Below, in pieces: positions 1 to 12,833 of a stretch of DNA of 12,833 bases. A program made the translations under genes and the position numbers. Position 1 is the first letter of the stretch; each line of letters begins with the position of its first letter. The stretch spans positions 1 to 12,833 of the forward strand of contig CAXIUT010000213.1 of NCBI GenBank assembly GCA_964035545.1, written 5' to 3'. Under the pieces are notes generated by a model. That model was not told the origin of the DNA, ran no database searches, and worked only from the letters and a program-made list of their open reading frames with translations. The stretch comes from Bugula neritina (lineage: Eukaryota; Animalia; Bryozoa).

Positions 1-80
1 CCCAACCCCAACCCCAACCCCAACCCCAACCCCAACCCCAACCCCAACCCCAACCCCAACCCCAACCCAACCCCAACCCC
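1..80. repeat. Left terminal telomere (CCCCAA)n
   Basis: About 13 C4A2 units from base 1, starting 5'-CCCAA, with one C3A2 variant near 66-70. Same repeat as oligohymenophorean (Tetrahymena-type) macronuclear telomeres. Confidence 0.98.
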
Positions 81-126
81 ATATATTTTATTATGAAATA
101 GTAATTATTTGTAAAGTTCTATTTTG

Positions 127-975
127 ATGACCTTGAAATAAGAAATAGCTGAACTCTGTAAAACTATCTTTGCCTTTGAGGATGATGTTAGTCGTTTTGT
201 ATGTAGATAGCTTCTCTTAAAGAAAGATTTGTTCAATATATCCCTTACAACACCTTCACTTCTATGGAATCATATGTTCGGATAGAGTTGTAAGGAGTGT
301 AGTCAAGATATGATCAAAAACTTTTTCAAAAAACATGGATTCAATATAAAATAAAACTAACTTGAATTGGTTGTTGGAATATATAGTAGTTCAAAAGTAA
401 AAAGCTAAGCAAAATGGATTTATGGCATATATATAAACCTTTAACCATGAAAATGGTTGACTAGATTATCGAAGTAAGATAAAAAAAGTATGTTTTAGCT
501 AAAAGTCATCAAATGCACTTTAAAATAACTGATTTATTATGCTAGATCATGAAAAAAACAATTAATTTCATATCTATTGCAAAACTAAATGAAACAAAAC
601 ATCGTCACAGCCAATCCATAATCAATCAACATCCACCCCTTCGATAAACAACAGTAATAAAACTAATAACATAGTCTACAATTGTATTTACATCCTTTTG
701 CTGAACTACCGACTTAAAGATATAGACTTGATAATGAAACATATAATGCGTAACTAGCTTTTTTGCGATAAACATTCAAAGAGTACATGATACCAGTCGG
801 ATATGCAAGAGGAAGGTGCAATCCAATTACTAGCGGTAGAAAGAAGATGCAGAGGAGATGGGAGGGGCTGGAATTGATGAAATATCATTGGGAAAATGTA
901 GATTATATATAAAATAAAAGAAAAAAGAAACCTATCTACTTAATAGAATAAAAATGCAGAAAATAAAGACTATGA
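127..975 (+). CDS. Hypothetical protein, possibly degenerate EF-hand family; gene model uncertain
   Basis: ATG127 opens MTLKEEIAELCKTIFAFEDDVSRFVCRELLLKKDLF...MIKNFFKKHGFNIKENELELVVGIYSSSK (UAR=Glu). That frame stops at TGA 448-450. A protein-like continuation (KLSKMDLWHIYKP...) starts in another frame at about 402 and stops at 702-704, so at least two frame changes are needed. The end could be TGA 973-975, 992-994 or 1018-1020. Confidence 0.35.
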
Positions 976-1021: not shown

Positions 1022-2066
1022 TCATTTGTTTAGAGTATTCAGTTGTATATTTTTGAGTAGAATTTAATACTGCCTCATAAACTAGACTTCTCTTATTTTG
1101 ATATAATCAACTAGACTGAATTAGATCTTTTAGTTATCAATTTGTTTGAGCCCCACTATCATCCACACCAAATGCGATACAACTCGACCCAATTGGACGC
1201 ATCTTGTCCTCTCCTAGGGCTATTTTGGACAGTTATAGCTAACAGACAATTTATCGAAATAGAGTTCGATCATTTTGCATTTAGTGGGTTCAGATAATTC
1301 CAGTTCTTGCAAAATGTTAAATTTTTTAGAATATATAGTTGTAATTTAGTTAAAGAAATTAGCCAAGTCGTAGCCTATGATGTTGAATTGACTAAACTAG
1401 TAATCTAAAATATAAATTTATTTGTTATGGAGGAGAAGGTTACCCAGATGTAGATCATTATGAGCTAAAGCATATAAACTACTATCCATTTACTTTTATA
1501 TTTTATTCATTATTTCTTTACAGCCGAATATTTTTTTCTAGTGATTATTGGCATTGCTAGACTAGATGTGGACATTAGTTTTTCTTTTTTTGATAAATAG
1601 ATTGATATATGTTGAATAGCTATCTGAATTTGTATCTGGGGGTGATGTTGTTTTTGATGTTGTACTGCTAGACATTTTCTTTATATTTACACGAAAACTA
1701 TGATATTTTTTAAGTCATGGTAAGAAACATATCCTAATAAAATTTATTTTGATCAAGAGGCTAAGATTAAAGATACTGTTCTATCCTGAATGTAGGACTC
1801 GACTTGTATATAATAGGATATTGTTTGTTCTATGCCAATTTGGGTACAAGAAAAGCTTAGAGTTGACTATCAGCGAATTCAGGCAAAACTGTCTTATTGT
1901 ATATCTTCAAAACAAATGATTCAGTCTGTACTGTTGCCTTGTAGACATCATTAGAAAAGGAATATAGATTCTATATTGACACCATACCTGGATCGATCTC
2001 CATCTTTATTTATTTCTTGTAGTACTCGACTATTATCAGTTTAGCTTTGATTTATTTGTCCTCCAT
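1022..2066 (-). CDS. Choline/ethanolamine kinase family protein
   Basis: MEDKEIKAK...FSNDVYKA...FVLKIY...FRIEQY; Brenner-type motif AHNDLHLGNLL; choline-kinase motif ILDYEFSQFNIIGYDLANFFNE; C-terminal SHLVWMIVG and IEFSLVDYIKIR; TGA at 1024-1022. Needs one +1 frame correction, most simply at the T7 run 1531-1537. Confidence 0.9.
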
Positions 2067-2163: not shown

Positions 2164-3312
2164 ATGAAAGAAGACACTTATCTTGACGACAACTCATAGT
2201 CAGTTCGTCTTTGGTTTCGTAATTGTTATAAAGAGGCTAAACTTCTAACTGTCAACTCTCCTTGTCCTCAACCTGATTTAATTTCTTTTGCTTCTCTTTG
2301 TTTTAACATTCCAGAATAATATGTCATTCTTTTCTACAACGGTTTTAAAATAAGTCATCAAGAAGCACTGATTCTTTTGGTTGATAAAACAATTTTACAT
2401 GTAATAGATCAAAGAAAAGTGAACTGTCCTTAAGTTATTATCAAAGTCAGACCTAGATGGAATGCAGCTTGTCATAAACTAGAAATACAAACAGATATAA
2501 CAGTTAAATAACTTATTGATAACTATCTTGTTCCAAGATATGGAATAGAATCAAAGTCATTTTTATTGGTTTATGTTGGAAAGTTTCTTAATCCAACAAA
2601 TTTAATTAGATAAGAGTCAATATAAGATCAATCTGAAATATTTTTAGTTTTAAAGAAAAAGAATAATTAAGATTGTCCTAAAGTAGCTATTGAACATCAT
2701 AGTTCAAAAAGAGTAGCTAAAAGTTCTCCATCAATAGGTACTAATGTTCCAGTTACTTATTTCACTTCATTACAATCTCTTAAGAAAAAACAACAACAAC
2801 CACAACAACTAAATAGTCAAAAAAGTAGTTAGTCTAAAATAGCACCTGATCAAATAGAACAATTACAACCTCTTATTCCTAATAGCTAAATAACATCTGT
2901 TGGACCTTTATAAAAATCAGCAATGTTATTTTCAAAAGATCTAGATAAAAAATAATTATAAAAAGCAGGAGCTGGAGCATCAAGTCATTCATCAGCAGCT
3001 CCACAAGCTAAAGTCTAAAGTCTGGTAGCCTCAGGGTCAGTATAAGAGAAAATATCAAAAGAAGAGAAAAGTTCAAGAGAAGAGAAAGGATCAAGAGAAG
3101 AGAAAGGATCAGGAGAGGCTTCAGCATAAATAAAGATAACAATAACAGGACAAGATAAAAATAAACTTAATTAATCAAATCTAAGTTACCAAAAGATTCT
3201 TTAGCTCTAATCTAAAAAAGGACCAAAAGCACAGACTTCATTAATAAAAGATTCAGGTCATCTTTAGCAGTTACTAGAAGATATACAAAAATAAAAATAA
3301 ACAGAAGAATGA
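2164..3312 (+). CDS. Protein with two tandem ubiquitin-like domains and a low-complexity tail
   Basis: Uninterrupted 382-aa ORF from ATG2164 to TGA3310-3312. The second domain reads VIIKVRP...LEIQTDITVKELI...YGIESKSFLLVYVGKFLNP...IEDQSEIFLVLK, a ubiquitin-fold pattern. The first domain has a similar FNIPEEYVILFYNGFKI...ILHVID. S/Q/E/K-rich tail. Domain call is by eye. Confidence 0.75.
3061..3114 (+). repeat. 18-bp coding tandem repeat x3 (EEKSSR-EEKGSR-EEKGSG)
   Basis: gaagagaaaagttcaaga / gaagagaaaggatcaaga / gaagagaaaggatcagga. Confidence 0.9.
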
Positions 3313-3426
3313 TATTGACCTAATAACATAAATGATATTGATCCTAATAGAATAAATCATAAATGATATTGATCCTAATAAATCTAAGTGAATATCATCA
3401 GTCAATCATAAGTGAATATCATCAGT
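3308..3426. repeat. Cluster of short duplications filling a convergent intergenic region
   Basis: AATGATATTGA(T)CCTAATA at 3308-3325, 3331-3349 and 3362-3380; TAAGTGAATATCATCAGT at 3385-3402 and 3409-3426. Confidence 0.9.
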
Positions 3427-4878: not shown

Positions 4879-5910
4879 TCATTCAAGTCCTTTCTTCTTC
4901 ATATCATTTATAAACTATTTCCTTTGTTTTAAAAATTCAGGAGCAAATACTCCCATCCAAAGTAAGTTGAAAAACCAATAAGGAACTAAGTTATAAATAA
5001 AACTTTGTATTTTATGAGAGATATGACCATTCGTTACTTTCTAATGTCCCCAGTCATTTATTATTCCTTTAGCACATTGGGAAGGAGTAATAGTAAAAAG
5101 ATCTAAATTTTTAAATCCAGTCATAAAAGTTGATACTTCTGAAGGATTAACTAATAACCAATCTATTTATGGAACCTATTAAGCTACATTTTTAGTTAAT
5201 TTTGAAACATAGGCCTTAGAAGCAGAGTACAAACCTTCGATTGGTAATGGCAAATCACCTAAATATATATAATAATTTACCAGCAATAGAAGCAATATTG
5301 ACTATAGCACATTTTTTACCATTTTTTATTTTCTATTTAAAAATCTGACCAAATTTATAAGTCAAAGCACAGACACAGAAACAATTGATGTTGATTAGAT
5401 TGATAACTTGAGAAGTAGTATGATTATGAAAGTAGTCTAATAAATCCATGCCAGCATTATTAACAACTATTGATAAGTCAAATTTATTTAATTCAGGTAA
5501 AACTGAGTCGATTTATTACTTTTGTCCTTCTTCTGAAAGATCAGCAACTATGTATTCTACTTTTATTTGAGGATATTTTTACTCTAATTATGTTTTAGCT
5601 TTCTTTAGTTTTGATTATTTTCTTGCCAAAAGTACAATATTCATACCTTAACTAGCAAGTTATTCAGCTATCTATCTTCCTATTCCTTTCTTATTAAATA
5701 TGTACCTTCTGAACTTCCAGTAATAAGAGCCCATGCACCTTTACCATATCTTTAAATGAAATTGATTCTTTTTCTGAAGAGTTTGAATATTCCAAGAAAG
5801 GCTTTGATCAAAAAGGTGAGAAGAGGAACAGCTCCGAAAAATATACATATATAGTAGAGAAGAGGGCTAAATATGTAGATGGAGTTGAGGATAGATGTGA
5901 ATATGGACAT
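4879..5910 (-). CDS. Short-chain dehydrogenase/reductase, 17-beta-HSD12 / very-long-chain 3-oxoacyl-CoA reductase type
   Basis: Hydrophobic N-terminus; YGKGAWALITGSSEGIGREIAEELA (TGxxxGIG), VNNAG, AIVNIASIAG, catalytic YSASK. Two introns (5686-5705, 5259-5280). TGA at 4881-4879. Confidence 0.93.
5259..5280 (-). other. 22-nt spliceosomal intron
   Basis: GTAAATTATTATATATATTTAG; removal restores ASIAG-DLPLP...YSASK. Confidence 0.9.
5686..5705 (-). other. 20-nt spliceosomal intron
   Basis: GTACATATTTAATAAGAAAG; removal restores TGSSEGIG. Confidence 0.9.
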
Positions 5911-6038
5911 AGATATTATATTAAATAACTAATATGAATAAAATCAACTAAAAAAAAGATGATTAAAGAATATTTATTTAATATTTTTAATTATTTTTTG
6001 AAGGATGACAAATTTCTATTATTTATAATACTAACAGA

Positions 6039-7478
6039 ATGTCAGTTATCGCAAGTCTACAATCAAATTTATCCAAAGAATTACTTTAAACTAAGACAGC
6101 ACTAACTTCTGAGTTATTTATTTTCAATTCAATGCTTCAACACTTCAAAACAACTATTTCTTAAACTCTTTCCACATACTCTTCTCATTACTAGTAAAAT
6201 ATCAATAAATTGAAGGAAGAAGTGACTAATCTTAAGTGTGAAAATACTTTTTTACAATAGCAAAATTAATAATTAGATAAATAGTTGAAGCAGAATAGTT
6301 AGGATAGGAAGGATTTGAGTAATAATTATTAGAAAATAAGTTAAGAAAATAAATACAATGAATAAAAGGTGTAATAACTAAAAAGATAAATAAAAATAAT
6401 TCGTAGTTATCTGCAGTAATATCAATAAATGCATAACAAATAATAATAGCAAATAGTTAATTTCGATTAATAGTAGCCTTCTCAGATGTATGATGGGTTA
6501 TAAACTATCAAATAAGTCAGTTAGTATGATATGTCAGTATCAGCATCGATGTAGTCTTTGGTTTCCAATCAGGATATACCTGTTTTTGACGATAAAACTA
6601 ATATAGTAACATAGTTGACATAGAAAGATAAGTGTTAAGTGAATAATTATCAAGATGCTCTTTAAATATTGAAAAATTATAATAATGGTACTATGATCAA
6701 AAAGAATAAAAAAGATAATCAAGAAAATCAACCTTAAACAATATCTTCAAAATAGAATCATGTCAAACAAGGATGTAATGTTACGATAGCAAAAATAAAA
6801 AAAATGAGAAAAATATAAAGTCTAGAATTAGAAAGTACATATACAATCAAATAAGAACAGAAAGAATCAAGAAATAGTAGAAATGAACTGAAAGGATAAA
6901 ATAAAGATCAATCTTCATCAAAAAAAGATCAATCTTCATCAAAGATAGTACCAACAGATAGACTAAGCATCTGTACTACTAGAACTCCTTCTCAGTAAAT
7001 CATTTCACTAGAATAACCGATCAAAAATATCAATCAAATTATCCAATCTATCAATAGCAGTTGTCAACCGCCTTCTAACATTTTAAAAATAAGAATAGAT
7101 ACATGTAAAATATACTACTCTAACTCTTTAGTCTATCAAGGCAGATGTAACTAGTTTGACCTTCCAGAAGGGTTTGGAAAACTAACTTTAAATGGATAAA
7201 TAGTTTATCAAGGAGAATGGAGACAAGGAAAACTACATGGTTGGGGTAAACTTGTCCTCTTGCCTTTTTCTAAATCTAAATAAAGAGCTGTGATTCAAGT
7301 AGATGGTAACTTTAGATGCGGACGTTTGGAAGGTAACTCAGTTTGTGTGTTCAATACTGGATAGAAGTTTATGGGAGTTATCAGACATGGATAAATATAG
7401 CAAGAAGGAACCTTTGTTAGCTAGAAAGGAATACTTACAGGACATTGGGAAAACAGTTGTCTTGTCATGCTCATATGA
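6039..7478 (+). CDS. MORN-repeat protein with N-terminal coiled coil (479 aa)
   Basis: Uninterrupted ORF. C-terminal YQGRCNEFDLPEGFGKL, YQGEWRQGKLHGWGKL, VDGNFRCGRLEG and TGHWENS are MORN-type repeats. TGA at 7476-7478. Confidence 0.88.
6903..6944 (+). repeat. 21-bp coding tandem duplication (KDQSSSK x2)
   Basis: aaagatcaatcttcatcaaaa / aaagatcaatcttcatcaaag. Confidence 0.9.
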
Positions 7479-7567
7479 ATATTATATTTACTTATTAATA
7501 TTACTAGCAAATTTATATTATTTCCATTGATTATAGGAATTAGAATATTTTTAATTTATTTTCTTCT

Positions 7568-8920
7568 ATGTCCTTAAAACTATCAGACTTCGAAACTATC
7601 CGTGACTTAGGTACTGGCTCTTTTGGATCAGTTAAATTAGTCAAAAAAAAAGACAATCAACAAGTTCTAGCACTCAAAACAGTGTCTCTCAGTAGACTCA
7701 GTCAAAAGGATAAAGATAATGCACTTAATGAAGTACGATTGCTAGCATCTATTCATATCCCTAATGTTATTGCTTACAAAGCTTCTTTATTTGATCAATA
7801 AACAAATTCACTTTGTATTTTTATGTAGTATGCTGATGGTGGAGATCTTACAGTATTTATTTTATTATCTTTAGGCTAAAATACAAGAACTTCGAGAAGA
7901 AAACTAGCCTAGAGGTTTTGATGAGAAATATGTCTGGAAAGTAGCTTATGAAATTCTTAATGGTTTGAATATGTTACACTCTAACAAGATTATTCATAGA
8001 GATATTAAAAGTGCCAACATATTCTTTGTAAATGGTATTGCCAAACTAGGAGATCTCAATGTAAGTAAGGTAGCTGATCATGGTATGTGCTAGACCCAAA
8101 CAGGTACTCCTTATTATACTAGTCCATAAATATGGCAAGGAAAGAAGTATGGAAGTAAATGTGATATTTGGTCTCTTGGAGTTCTTTTGTATGAAATGTG
8201 TACTTTAAAAATGCCTTTTAAAGCACATGATTTTCCTTCTTTGTATCGGACAGTTGTAGAAGGATAGTATACACCTCTACCTACTCATTTTTCATCAGAA
8301 ATACATAATTTAGTTAGAATGTGTCTCATTGTAGAATAAGAAATGAGACCTTCAGCTTCAGAATTGTTATAAACTACTGTTCTAAAAGGAATGGAAATGA
8401 GTCTTTCTTCTTTTAATGCTTAAGAAGGATAAGTCAGATTGATTGATCCGATTAAATGTCCAAAAGTTTTAAGATATTTAGCAGTTAAACTACCAAAACC
8501 AAGATTCTAAGAAAAGAAGGTGACTTTCAATAAATCTTTTAAAAAAGAAGGAGAATAAAATTCATTCAAGATAAAAAGTGTTAGAAAGATAAGATCCTAA
8601 AAACATATTCAAATGTAAGACAATGAACCGAGTATTATGAATAGTCCAAAAGTTTCTAATAAAATCAGATCAAGAAAGATAATAAATTTAGATGACTAAT
8701 AACATCCAAAACTTAATAAATTAGAGAAAGTAGGATCAAAGAAGAATATCAGATTACCTAAATTATAAAATGAATCAAAAGTGCTTTTGCCTCCTATCCA
8801 AAACAAAGATGAATAAAAAAAATCTCTAAAACATATTGGTTCATCTCGAAAAGTACATATGAAATAATATAGTTAATAAACACTTTAGCTAGACACATAA
8901 GACTAGAGAAATAAAACTGA
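7568..8920 (+). CDS. NIMA-related (NEK) Ser/Thr protein kinase
   Basis: LGTGSFGSV, ALK, NALNEVRLLASI, FMEYADGGDL, HRDIKSANIF, KLGDLNVSK, TQTGTPYYTSPEIW, DIWSLG. Intron at 7853-7874. The 3' end is uncertain: the frame as written reaches TGA 9021-9023 and overlaps the next gene. TGA 8918-8920, just before a T-rich spacer, is more plausible if one base is missing. Confidence 0.93.
7853..7874 (+). other. 22-nt spliceosomal intron
   Basis: GTATTTATTTTATTATCTTTAG; removal gives GGDLT-AKIQEL and the downstream kinase frame. Confidence 0.9.
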
Positions 8921-8979
8921 TTCCTTTCTTCATTTTACTTTATTTTATCAATTTTATCAATTAGTATATAATAATAACA

Positions 8980-10680
8980 ATGATTTAAATGGTAAGAAGA
9001 ACTTCTGTGGGTAAAATAACTGACTGGAGACATGACTTTCTTACCCTTCTGACAAAAAACCTACTTCAAGCAGAACAAGACAAAAACAACCTTAACCCAC
9101 TAGCTAACAATACTAATCTTTTCAAAATAATCAAAGATGATATAATTAGTCGATAGTTTCTTGATGTATTGGTTACTCATAAAGAAAGAGATGTTCTTGT
9201 TATTGGAGTATTACTACCTAAATCACTATTGATAACAGTTAAATAAATATTACTAGGATCTGAAGGAGGAGAGAGATAAATCAATGGAGGTATTTTGTAT
9301 GGAACTTTTCGATAAAAGAATCAAAAACATCAAGTCAATACTTTATATCTATTTTTGTAGACAGATAAAGTAGTTGATGGGAGATTAGAATTAAACTAAA
9401 AATTACTTTATAATATTTCAATGATTTGGATAACAACTGAAAGTCTAGCTAGAAGAAGGTGTTCTTTATGGTAAAGTAGATAATAAATATTTAAAAAGAA
9501 TTCAACTTTGTTAATTATTAAAGAAGAACATGCAGCAATAAACGAATAATTTATGTAAAAACTATAAAGTATATTTTGGAGTGTACTATCAATAACTCAT
9601 GCAGATCTTCAAAGTAAACAGCAATTCAAAATGGGAAATTAACTGACTCCTAAAATGGCATATAGACAGGCTTATAACTAGCTGGCTGAAGAAGATGAAG
9701 AGGTACTTTTTAGATCAAAAATATTTTAATTATAAAAAATAACACTAAAAAACAATCATAATTATAGTTTATGTCTTTTTTGTTTACCTTTTCTTTATTT
9801 TATTTGTTGCGTAATTCGATAATAGCAAAGAAATATCAAACAGCTTATTTAGATATCAATAAATGGATATTTCAAATTGATAGAAGAACAGTTATAAATA
9901 TTTTTAGATGGGTTGAAATTGCCAATAGATTAACTTAAGTTAAGAAACATTATAGGAACATAATTAAAAAGAATAATGATTGCTGTTAGAAAAAATATAA
10001 TACAATTTCAAGGATTATTCAAAAATGTAGATTATCTTTATAGATTTATAGATAATTTGACTAGAATATTATCAATAAAATAAAAATAATTTTATTAAAG
10101 AAATATATAAAAAGCTACTATCTATAATGAAGATCTTCTTTAAAAACTATATAGTCATTTAATAGAAAAGAAATTCAATTAAAATTTATCAGAAAGAGCA
10201 CTTAAAGATTATCAAATGGATTTCCAACATTTACTTGATACATATGGTAGCTAGAGTATAAGAGCTACTACACAACTAAAAACATTTAATGATTTTATGT
10301 CACATAAAAAGATAGATTACTTCTAAAATTTATAAAAAGAATTATCTTAATCTAAAAGAAGATATTCTAATTAAAAATAGTAATTAAAAGATAGGTTGGA
10401 TATTCAGGTAGGTGTCTTATAAACTTTAGAAGAATAGATTAAAGAATTGGAAGGGAAAAGACAACTAATAGATAGGTAGAATAGTCATTTAAAGAAAAAT
10501 ATAAATGATTTGAAAAATAAAAATAGATAACATAATATATCTAGTTCACCACTAATGCCTAGGAAAAAACCAAGGATGATAGAAAGTAGTAGTTTGTATA
10601 AGTAAAGTAGGTTTTCTTATAAAAGAAAAGATAAATAATAAAAAGGATGTTGTAGTACTTGTTGTTGTTAAGTTATGTGA
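8980..10680 (+). CDS. Coiled-coil protein with C-terminal Cys cluster/CaaX; probable degenerate guanylate-binding-protein-like (566 aa)
   Basis: Uninterrupted ORF from ATG8980 (or 8989) to TGA10678-10680, ending KGCCSTCCCEVM. The N-terminal FKII...EFLDVL...DVLVIGVL and helical YNEDLLEKLYSHLIEKKF...DYQMDFQHLLDTY resemble GBP architecture, but there is no GxxxxGKS. ORF is confident, family is inferred. Confidence 0.75.
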
Positions 10681-10723: not shown

Positions 10724-10803
10724 GGGTTGGGGTTGGGGTTGGGGTTGGGGTTGGGGTTGGGGTTGGGGTTGGGGTTGGGGTTGGGGTTGGGGTTGGGGTT
10801 GGG
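10724..10803. repeat. Internal telomeric tract 1 (GGGGTT)n, 80 nt
   Basis: G4T2 array starting 43 nt after the TGA at 10680. Ends TTGGG, followed by unique AT-rich sequence. Confidence 0.98.
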
Positions 10804-11183
10804 TATTAAACTTAATCAGTTATAGTATGTCAAAGATAATGAGTTTATTTTACTAAAAATTTTAATTTAAAGATATTGATTATTAACTATGATGAACTAT
10901 CAGTTTTATTTTTTGTTAGTTTAAAAAATATATATATTTGGATACTATTTTATTCTTTGAATTTCTGGATTAAGAAGAAGAAAAATGGTTATTATCTCTT
11001 TATTTAAACAGTTCATATGATTATCTTATAGTCTTATTGATTATTTAGTGATAAAATTCTTATCTTTTATCAACATAAATATAAATATTGATCAATAGAA
11101 GTTTAAACATTAATTCTGATCATGATATTAAATGTTTACTGAAATAGATTAATATGTATTCCCTTATATAAAATATAAAATAT

Positions 11184-11222: not shown

Positions 11223-12747
11223 ATGAGTTAAATTCAACTATATCTAACCTTCCAAGCCAACTAGTCTATTAGCAATCCTCTAAAAGACAATCCTAAAACT
11301 AGCATATCAGATTTCTTTTTTCGTTAATATAGATTTCAAAAACTTTTAGGCCGAGGTTCATTCGCTCGAGTCTACAAAGCAATCAATCAATAAACATAAA
11401 AATAAGTTGCTATCAAAATAATCGATATCAAATAAATCTACGATATGCAACAAAGTTAATAAATTAAAAACAAATTGATGGGCTACATTTCTGCTTAATA
11501 AAACAACATGAAGAAATGCAGTAGTGCTCACGTAATAAAACTATTCGATTCGTTTTAAAATGATAAATGTAAAGTATATATACTAGAATACTGCAATTCA
11601 GGTAGTTTAGACGAATACCTAAAGAAAAAAGGAAGATTAGAAGAAATAGATGCAGTTACTATTCTCAAAGAAATTATATTTGGACTAGCTGTACTTTTTA
11701 TTCTAAATAGGAAATGCACAGAAACGGCATTATTCATCGAGATATCAAACCAGCTAATATTCTAATTCATAATGGTATTTTCAAAATAGCTGATCTTGGA
11801 TTTTCAAAATAATTATAAAAATAATAACTATAAAATCATACTTGTTTAGGTACTGGGGTTGGGGTTGGGGTTGGGGTTGGGGTTGGGTTGGGGTTGGGGT
11901 TGGGGTTGGGGTTGGGGTTGGGTCTAGGCTGATATATGGTCAATAGGAGTCATATTTTGTTTAATGCTCAACTATGATAGTGATTATAATTATGTTCAAA
12001 ATTTAATAAGAGTTAAAAAGCTAGCAAATTAACAATAAAAATTCAAAAACAAAATGTTTTATTAAAAAAATATTAGTATCTAAGCATTATCTTTTCTATG
12101 TAAAACATTATAATTAGATCAAGAAGAAAGAATGGACTGGTAATCAACTTTGAATCATAGCTTATTTTTCAAAAATACTATTACATTAAGTGAACATTTC
12201 ATGCCTCATCTTAAATCATAATTCTAATAATAAACTATGAAATAACATTAAAAAAATAAACTCAAAAAGTAAATCCAAAAAATACAATAATCTTAATATT
12301 AAGATATCTATGAATAATAATATAAAAATTCTCCAGTAAAAAGTAAATAAAATTATAGTATAACTAATGCAACTATATGTAGATCATTAAGTGGATCTGA
12401 TCATTAGGATCCAGATAGTATCAATACATAAGAACTATCAAGATATTAATTATTAAATAGATATTATCTTTAATGTAGAAAGGCAGAATATTTGTTAAAT
12501 AATATAGTTGATCCTTTATAAATAAAATATATTCAAGAAATATAGAAACAATAAAGAGTATAACTTTTGTTTTTGATAGTAATAAGATGTAAAAATAATG
12601 TTAGTAAAGCTAGAAAAAGAGTAAAACATAACTTTTCATAAAATATATTAAAATAATTTAAAAAACAAACAAATTCTTTGAAAAATAGAATATAACTTAA
12701 AATATAATATTATTCATAATTATTAAAATAATTTTAAAATAAATTAA
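11223..12747 (+). CDS. Ser/Thr protein kinase (ULK/CAMK-like), interrupted by a telomeric tract and truncated by the terminal telomere
   Basis: [25 protein letters not shown], intron 11691-11710, [24 protein letters not shown] | G4T2 tract | [11 protein letters not shown]...[11 protein letters not shown]. The APE segment is absent and there is no in-frame TGA before the telomere at 12748. Confidence 0.88.
11691..11710 (+). other. 20-nt spliceosomal intron
   Basis: GTACTTTTTATTCTAAATAG; removal gives [15 protein letters not shown]. Confidence 0.9.
11855..11922. repeat. Internal telomeric tract 2 (GGGGTT)n, 68 nt, inside the kinase CDS
   Basis: 11 units (one G3T2 at 11885-11889) plus a terminal GGG, between GGT ACT and TCTAGGCTGATATATGG. 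Confidence 0.98.
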
Positions 12748-12833
12748 GGGGTTGGGGTTGGGGTTGGGGTTGGGGGTTGGGGTTGGGGTTGGGGTTGGGG
12801 TTGGGGTTGGGGTTGGGGTTGGGTGGGGTTGGG
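12748..12833. repeat. Right terminal telomere (GGGGTT)n
   Basis: 86-nt G4T2 array with a G5 and a G3T1 variant, ending TTGGG. Confidence 0.98.

Follow-up and report, generated by a model that had tools for sequence, protein, structure and literature searches.

How does a run of telomeric repeats come to lie inside a protein kinase gene that resumes on the far side of it? The window analyzed here, a stretch of DNA of 12,833 nt taken as a whole, raises this question at the second of its two internal telomeric tracts, where G4T2 repeats stand in place of a conserved part of the kinase. The original prediction, made from the letters alone, had offered two answers: (a) that a break was extended by telomerase and rejoined to the distal fragment, or (b) that reads ending in a telomere overwrote the consensus of a longer isoform. 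The context of the tract favors the second answer, and the first survives as a less probable alternative. We consider it probable that tract 2 marks the end of shorter copies of the chromosome, carried into the assembled consensus, and is not a repaired break. The tract itself is most likely genuine telomere sequence, marking a genuine telomere-addition site within a coding region.

A capped molecule with two internal telomeric tracts

With C-strand repeats at its 5′ end and G-strand repeats at its 3′ end, the 12.8-kb window is a telomere-capped linear molecule, and we identify it as a complete ciliate macronuclear minichromosome (Table 1). It is AT-rich (GC 0.20-0.34) and gene-dense, with tiny introns. 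Since an 18-mer of the telomeric repeat has 36 matches in the window and none in 200 shuffles, a chance origin of the tracts is excluded. Their lengths along the window are 81, 81, 69, and 86 nt, so that the internal tracts match the terminal telomeres in size. Three of the four include irregular units (G3, G5, or a single T), and tract 2 contains an exact 35-nt unit in two copies.

Both internal tracts carry the G strand on the forward strand, as does the right terminal telomere, and thus have the orientation of a right end only. The window contains neither internal C4A2 repeats nor a G4T2-C4A2 junction of the kind that fusion or concatenation of whole molecules would produce. Tract 1 starts 43 nt past the stop codon (TGA) of the upstream gene, and about 420 nt separate it from the ATG of the kinase, a position that looks like the natural end of a compact minichromosome. 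A repeat search around the tracts returned no noteworthy flanking duplications or microhomology.

Table 1. Telomeric tracts, genes, and introns discussed in the text, with positions counted from the first letter of the window
Feature	Positions	Strand	Length (nt)	Details
Left terminal telomere	1-81		81	C4A2 repeats
NEK-type Ser/Thr kinase gene	7568-9023	+		Internal comparator
Intron of the NEK gene	7853-7874	+	22	Phase 0
Upstream gene	8989-10680	+		Function not assigned; ends with TGA at 10678-10680
Internal telomeric tract 1	10724-10804	+	81	G3T2 (G4T2)12 G3T; intergenic
Interrupted kinase, exon 1	11223-11690	+		ATG at 11223; Gly loop, VAIK, alpha-C Glu (TAA, 11496-98)
Intron of the interrupted kinase	11691-11710	+	20	GTACTTTTTATTCTAAATAG; reading frame 0 to 2; read directly
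Interrupted kinase, exon 2	11711-11854	+		Catalytic loop, DLG, activation loop; last residues TCLGT
Internal telomeric tract 2	11855-11923	+	69	(G4T2)5 G3T2 (G4T2)5 G3T; inside the kinase gene
CTAG	11924-11927	+		Between tract 2 and the resumed codons
Interrupted kinase, resumed	11928-12747	+		Frame 0; ADIWSIGV (subdomain IX) to subdomain XI, then low-complexity tail
Right terminal telomere	12748-12833	+	86	G4T2 repeats

If the molecule is a ciliate chromosome, to which ciliates does it belong? The open reading frames of the window are long only with TAA and TAG as sense codons and TGA as stop. In the neighboring NEK gene, the TAG at codon 87 (7826-28) aligns with the Glu of the "(M)EY" hinge, which is E in 93 of 98 homologues, and the TAA at codon 180 (8127-29) aligns with the Glu of the APE motif, present in 98 of 98. 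In the interrupted kinase, alignment to a hidden Markov model (HMM) places another TAA at the alpha-C Glu. Between the window and a related metagenome contig (L001, described below), we counted 13 exchanges of TAR and GAR against a single exchange of TAR and CAA. These alignments indicate that TAA and TAG specify Glu here and not Gln, with TGA as the stop codon.

Such a code has been reported for peritrich ciliates (PMC10553269) and, judged from the genetic code alone, the source of the window is most likely a peritrich or a close relative. Peritrichs, as Paramecium, show a narrow size distribution of tiny introns (PMC13685798); the confident introns of the window measure 20, 22, and 22 nt, are AT-rich, and all end in TAG. 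Two other candidates were considered. Paramecium bursaria, with 8-16-kb C4A2 minichromosomes, a GC content of 28.8%, and tiny introns, is ruled out by the Glu meaning of TAA and TAG in the window, and Oligohymenophorea sp. PL0344 is ruled out because UAA specifies Lys in that organism and its median intron is 57 bp. Scans of the window for tRNAs and Rfam families gave no match, and the window contains no rRNA.

The kinase gene on either side of tract 2

The motifs of the interrupted kinase carry on from exon 1 only once the 20-nt intron is taken out. From there the sequence is in substance as the original prediction had described it: the kinase reads to TCLGT, the G4T2 tract follows, and the same kinase then continues, in our reading from ADIWSIGV onward with CTAG ahead of it. 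The tract, put at 68 nt in that description, is one nucleotide longer. The reported +1 displacement of the downstream frame is also borne out: the codons of exon 2 start at positions equal to 2 modulo 3, the resumed codons (GCT GAT ATA TGG and onward) start at positions equal to 0 modulo 3, and 73 nt separate the last upstream codon from the first downstream codon. This CTAG may be the last bases of a tiny intron that was otherwise overwritten, in keeping with the TAG that ends the confident introns, or it may be exon sequence.

How much of the kinase is missing? The tract had been described as a replacement at the cost of about 15 codons; the loss is confirmed and the count proves slightly low. 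We derived an HMM from 98 full-length sequences homologous to the neighboring NEK kinase. Against it, TCLGT aligns with match state 170 and ADIWS with state 188, leaving states 171-187 unmatched. The missing part thus comprises exactly 17 match states (PyYasPEvwkdkpydyk), corresponding to the P+1 loop and the APE motif, and the Pfam coordinates of the window's own NEK agree that 17 residues are absent from the interrupted kinase.

Everything else that we would look for in a kinase is retained, namely the Gly loop, VAIK, alpha-C Glu, HRD, DLG, and subdomains IX-XI, and Pfam PF00069 matches exons 1 and 2 in pieces that cover profile positions 1-20, 73-111, and 114-146 (E = 3.6e-11 for the last piece). 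What the assembled sequence lacks is only the P+1 loop and APE segment that normally joins the activation loop to subdomain IX; tract 2 stands in its place. We take this absence as a property of the consensus and not necessarily of the kinase gene. The further suggestion that restoring the two G3 units to G4 would turn the tract into an in-frame (Gly-Val)12 found no support. A kinase with Gly-Val units where the P+1 loop and APE belong would not be active.

Is the gene otherwise decayed? Frame 0 contains no in-frame TGA across the 508 codons of 11223-12747, against eight in each of the other two frames. Because the kinase is undamaged outside the gap, an old, inherited lesion is unlikely. The kinase reading frame also runs into the terminal telomere without reaching a stop, whereas 2.7 in-frame TGAs would be expected in the last 189 codons. 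The end of the contig (~12747) may therefore be another addition site, lying inside or just after the kinase gene.

We also looked for other copies of the locus. Exact searches with the flanks gave no match in viral_contigs, JGI metagenome contigs, or GTDB genome contigs, and exact protein look-ups of three table-11 open reading frames of the window returned no record. In a profile search of the whole library with a 77-aa piece of the NEK kinase, the best matches had 58% identity, or 70-79% over fragments of 42-47 aa. The best NEK fragment match led to ENA metagenome contig ERZ27268107, k141_243044 (L001), which is syntenic with the window across the dehydrogenase-NEK region at 65-70% nucleotide identity and encodes an NEK kinase that is 59% identical. 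No orthologue of the interrupted kinase was found within 10 kb on this contig. A word search with a 44-aa piece of the interrupted kinase yielded no candidates, and the related loci in JGI metagenomes were kinases of 37-44% identity only. The intact sequence of the segment that tract 2 replaces was thus not recovered by any of these searches.

How the tract could have entered the gene

If tract 2 is the end of shorter chromosome copies, how would it come to be followed by more of the same gene? We envision the chromosome as a set of nested isoforms that share one left telomere and end at three alternative right telomere-addition sites, at ~10723 (just past the upstream gene), ~11854 (in the kinase), and ~12747, all within 2.1 kb. 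Tract 1 would be the addition site of the shortest isoform and tract 2 that of the middle isoform. On the longer isoform the kinase gene would be intact, on the middle isoform it would be truncated at its 3′ end, and a molecule running from unique sequence through telomere to unique sequence would not exist.

A shorter isoform would be nearly contained in a longer one, with only its telomere tail left unaligned. If the overlap-layout step allows for short overhangs, it would bring this telomere tail into the contig, displacing a similar length of unique sequence. A partial-order or window consensus in which the more abundant short isoform dominates would have the same effect. Shorter isoforms are probably more abundant, and their telomeres of ~70-80 nt would displace unique sequence before the longer isoform resumes.

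The evidence that leads us to favor such a composite is that the tracts are oriented as right ends, are the size of telomeres, and replace sequence of similar length, that tract 1 lies near a stop codon, and that the kinase is otherwise undamaged. Of the 73 replaced nt, the 17 codons would take up 51 nt, and the remaining 22 nt are a typical size for introns in the window. Overwriting base for base would fit this sum (51 + 22 = 73); the fit is compatible with overwriting but no proof of it, and it needs a putative intron in the span. An intron of length 3n + 1 would also give the observed +1 offset, and CTAG directly precedes the resumed codon. However, the genes of the window have about one intron each, and an intron within the missing 17-codon span is for that reason uncommon a priori, which counts against strict overwriting. 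Many modern pipelines soft-clip telomere tails instead of incorporating them, which also counts against a composite consensus.

An alternative, which we regard as unlikely, is that the tract is a telomere patch. The chromosome would have broken in the kinase gene, the left end would have been healed by telomerase with ~70 nt of G4T2, and the healed end would have been ligated to a resected, unhealed distal fragment; the same course of events would have taken place at 10724. Tract 2 has the length of a telomere, and its flanks are colinear with some unique sequence lost (17 profile positions), although this last feature is equally expected if the consensus was overwritten. Telomerase and end joining are both active in ciliate macronuclei, breaks there are healed with telomeres during vegetative life, and in Paramecium such healing is frequent (PMC13076228). 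Moreover, interstitial telomeric repeats are on record in Paramecium macronuclear DNA (Katinka and Bourgain, 1992, as related in PMC9543784).

Against these points, a patch requires two rare events within 1.1 kb of one molecule, in identical orientation, and to enter the consensus the patched molecule would have to prevail in a nucleus that is highly polyploid. In the Paramecium macronucleus, telomeres are reported to inhibit the joining of one end to another (Bourgain and Katinka, 1991, as cited in PMC9543784). The likeness between the length of the tract and the length of sequence lost would be coincidental, and nested telomere-addition sites give the same pattern without a new mechanism. 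The general case, in which the tracts are physically internal because breaks arising during or after macronuclear development were capped by telomerase and religated to the distal fragment so frequently that the products prevail in the population, seems to us distinctly unlikely. It would mean that telomere-sized "scars" replaced about 50-70 nt, twice on a 12.8-kb chromosome.

It is very unlikely, in our judgment, that the tract arose as some other artifact of library or assembly, such as a chimeric read, an amplification product, or local reassembly by a polisher that, at a pile-up of soft-clipped reads, connected the extensions from left and right through telomere k-mers. The duplicated 35-nt unit in tract 2 could reflect a graph or consensus product, and the irregular units in three of the four tracts point the same way. 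However, random chimeras are not expected to resume colinearly in one gene, and would usually give G4T2-C4A2 or inverted junctions. Reads that end in telomere at tract 2 would still be required, which reduces this proposal to the biology of shorter chromosome copies ending there.

We give hardly any credence to a telomere-like tract inherited through the germline, whether in a kinase pseudogene or in a gene from which the tract is spliced (GT at 11858 to AG at 11927) or translated as Gly-Val or Gly-Leu: excision of these 70 nt does restore the frame (...TCLGTG joined to ADIWS), but a G-rich intron of that length is unlike the 20-22-nt AT-rich introns of the window, the spliced product would have neither P+1 loop nor APE, the frame is broken as written, the kinase gene shows no other decay, and the tract has the repeat, orientation, and length of functional telomeres.

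The possibility that the tract is simply an intron was examined separately and rejected. Excision as a canonical GTA...TAG intron (11850-11927) leads into a TGA. The only excision that restores the frame is the G-rich one of 70 nt, which leaves the APE segment deleted.

Telomere-addition sites in other ciliates

Internal telomere tracts that derive from nested telomere-addition sites are a phenomenon already known, and a close likeness to the window is found in P. bursaria. The minichromosomes of this species are mostly 8-16 kb long, and its telomere-addition sites are dense and highly variable, with about 30% in coding regions (PMC7702705). Its breakage sites vary even between molecules that carry the same genes (Cheng et al., 2020, PMC7702705). 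P. bursaria and the window have in common multi-gene minichromosomes, C4A2/G4T2 caps, tiny introns, and a GC content near 28%, and the three sites in the last 2.1 kb of the window fit the P. bursaria picture of dense addition sites. The two differ in that the P. bursaria sites were mapped from reads, whereas those of the window are deduced from tracts in a consensus, and in that TAA and TAG specify Glu in the window and not Gln.

Conflict between a consensus and its reads has a counterpart in Blepharisma. In long-read assemblies of this ciliate, the consensus and the mapped reads conflict where the molecules are internally fragmented, and the contigs concerned had to be split and trimmed (bioRxiv 10.1101/2021.12.14.471607 / PMC9942806). 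Telomere-bearing reads map inside Blepharisma contigs (ATAS, assembly "cruft"; Singh et al., PMC9942806), as we propose for the window. Unlike the window, Blepharisma has a telomere unit of CCCTAACA, a telomere length with a mode of 209 bp, and larger molecules, and the Blepharisma paper (PMC9942806) gives no description of telomere tracts embedded in a contig at the expense of unique sequence.

Internal telomeric repeats have also been counted in contigs with two telomeres, amounting to 39 in 38 chromosomes of Oxytricha trifallax and 36 in 36 chromosomes of Stylonychia lemnae (PMC7285179). Like the tracts of the window, these are rare runs inside contigs capped at both ends; they differ in being G4T4 repeats of nanochromosomes in assemblies of the short-read era, and their origin is likewise not settled (PMC7285179). 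The nearest precedent for a real patch appears to be the interstitial repeats of Paramecium primaurelia (Katinka and Bourgain, 1992, as cited in PMC9543784). As presented in PMC9543784, that work concerns the integration of injected DNA, whereas the window holds a colinear gene with a tract inside it. In Paramecium scaffolds, "internal telomeric sites" are taken to reflect polyploid chromosomes that vary in length.

Vertebrate genomes contain short interstitial telomeric sequences that were inserted by telomerase during the repair of double-strand breaks. The proposed mechanism is that of a rejoined break, with telomerase adding repeats at the broken end before it is joined again. The vertebrate cases differ from the window in being germline and evolutionarily fixed, usually with the flanking sequence kept, and the window bears no sign of inheritance.

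What would these tracts mean for ciliate genomes? The window appears to represent a ciliate that reads TAA and TAG as Glu and has multi-gene minichromosomes of ~13 kb like those of P. bursaria, with telomere-addition sites close together and one of them in a coding region. If tract 2 was physically internal, it would document telomerase patch repair and rejoining in the somatic nucleus as a source of gene inactivation, and would matter to the biology of telomeres and genome rearrangement. If, as we favor, it is the end of shorter chromosome copies merged into one consensus, then internal telomere tracts in ciliate contigs flag alternative telomere-addition sites and corrupt gene models. The missing APE segment and the frameshift of the kinase would then be apparent only, and annotators would do well to mask tracts of this kind, or to resolve them with the reads, before they call genes.

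A second telomeric tract and the right end of the window

The G4T2 tract inside the interrupted kinase gene (11855–11923) is accompanied by a second internal G4T2 tract, which lies 43 nt 3′ of the TGA of the upstream gene (the open frame at 8989–10680) and about 420 nt 5′ of the kinase ATG (see table). The two tracts match in orientation and length class. Between the kinase catalytic domain and the terminal telomere (11928–12747) there is no in-frame TGA, while about 2.7 would be expected over the last 189 codons. One possibility is that the right contig end is itself a site of telomere addition, located inside or just past the interrupted kinase gene; another is that the reading frame shifts at an intron that escaped detection.

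Coordinates of additional features in the window
Feature	Window	Strand	Size	Details
Second internal G4T2 tract	10724–10804		81 nt	Near-perfect repeat; intergenic
Short-chain dehydrogenase/reductase gene	4882–6136	-		adh_short matches
Tandem repeat, in frame	3044–3116		18-nt unit	Predicted coding region
Tandem repeat, in frame	3308–3426		24-nt unit	Predicted coding region
Tandem repeat, in frame	6899–6943		21-nt unit	Predicted coding region
Intron	11691–11710		20 nt
Intron	7853–7874		22 nt
Intron	5259–5280	-	22 nt
Weaker candidate intron	898–920		23 nt
Weaker candidate intron	1316–1338		23 nt
Syntenic block	4889–5775			L001 7185–8091
Syntenic block	7175–8608			L001 9505–10923
Reassigned TAG	7826–7828			NEK, invariant hinge Glu
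Reassigned TAA	8127–8129			NEK, APE Glu
Reassigned TAA TAA	11496–11501			Interrupted kinase, alpha-C Glu

Neighboring genes and synteny

The short-chain dehydrogenase/reductase gene, which is split by a 22-nt intron, contains a YxxxK-type segment, and two stop-free pieces of it give weak adh_short matches (E = 9e-4 and 0.07). No Pfam matches were found for the coding pieces carrying the three tandem repeats, one of which consists of four copies of a Lys/Arg/Glu-rich 6-residue unit. The open frame of NEK, the comparator kinase gene, ends at a TGA (9021–9023) and shares about 35 nt with the open frame that follows, whose first ATG is at 8989; either genes are very tightly packed or overlapping here, or one of the two gene models is wrong at this junction.

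From the short-chain dehydrogenase to NEK, the window is syntenic, at 65–70% nucleotide identity, with L001, a metagenome contig of a related ciliate (ENA ERZ27268107, contig k141_243044; 52.8 kb, GC 0.35). L001 lacks the two genes that follow NEK in the window, and gene order to the right of NEK therefore differs between them.

Introns and genetic code

The introns are tiny and AT-rich, of GTA...TAG form and with lengths that are not multiples of three, resembling those of Paramecium and of published peritrich genomes.

The codon positions in the two kinases of the window, together with 13 TAA/TAG-to-GAA/GAG exchanges in either direction relative to L001 (9896–11344), which uses the same code, show that TAA and TAG encode glutamate rather than glutamine. 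This assignment is that of NCBI table 30, the peritrich nuclear code, and the source is therefore probably a peritrich-like ciliate. Annotation with table 6 would mistranslate the window.
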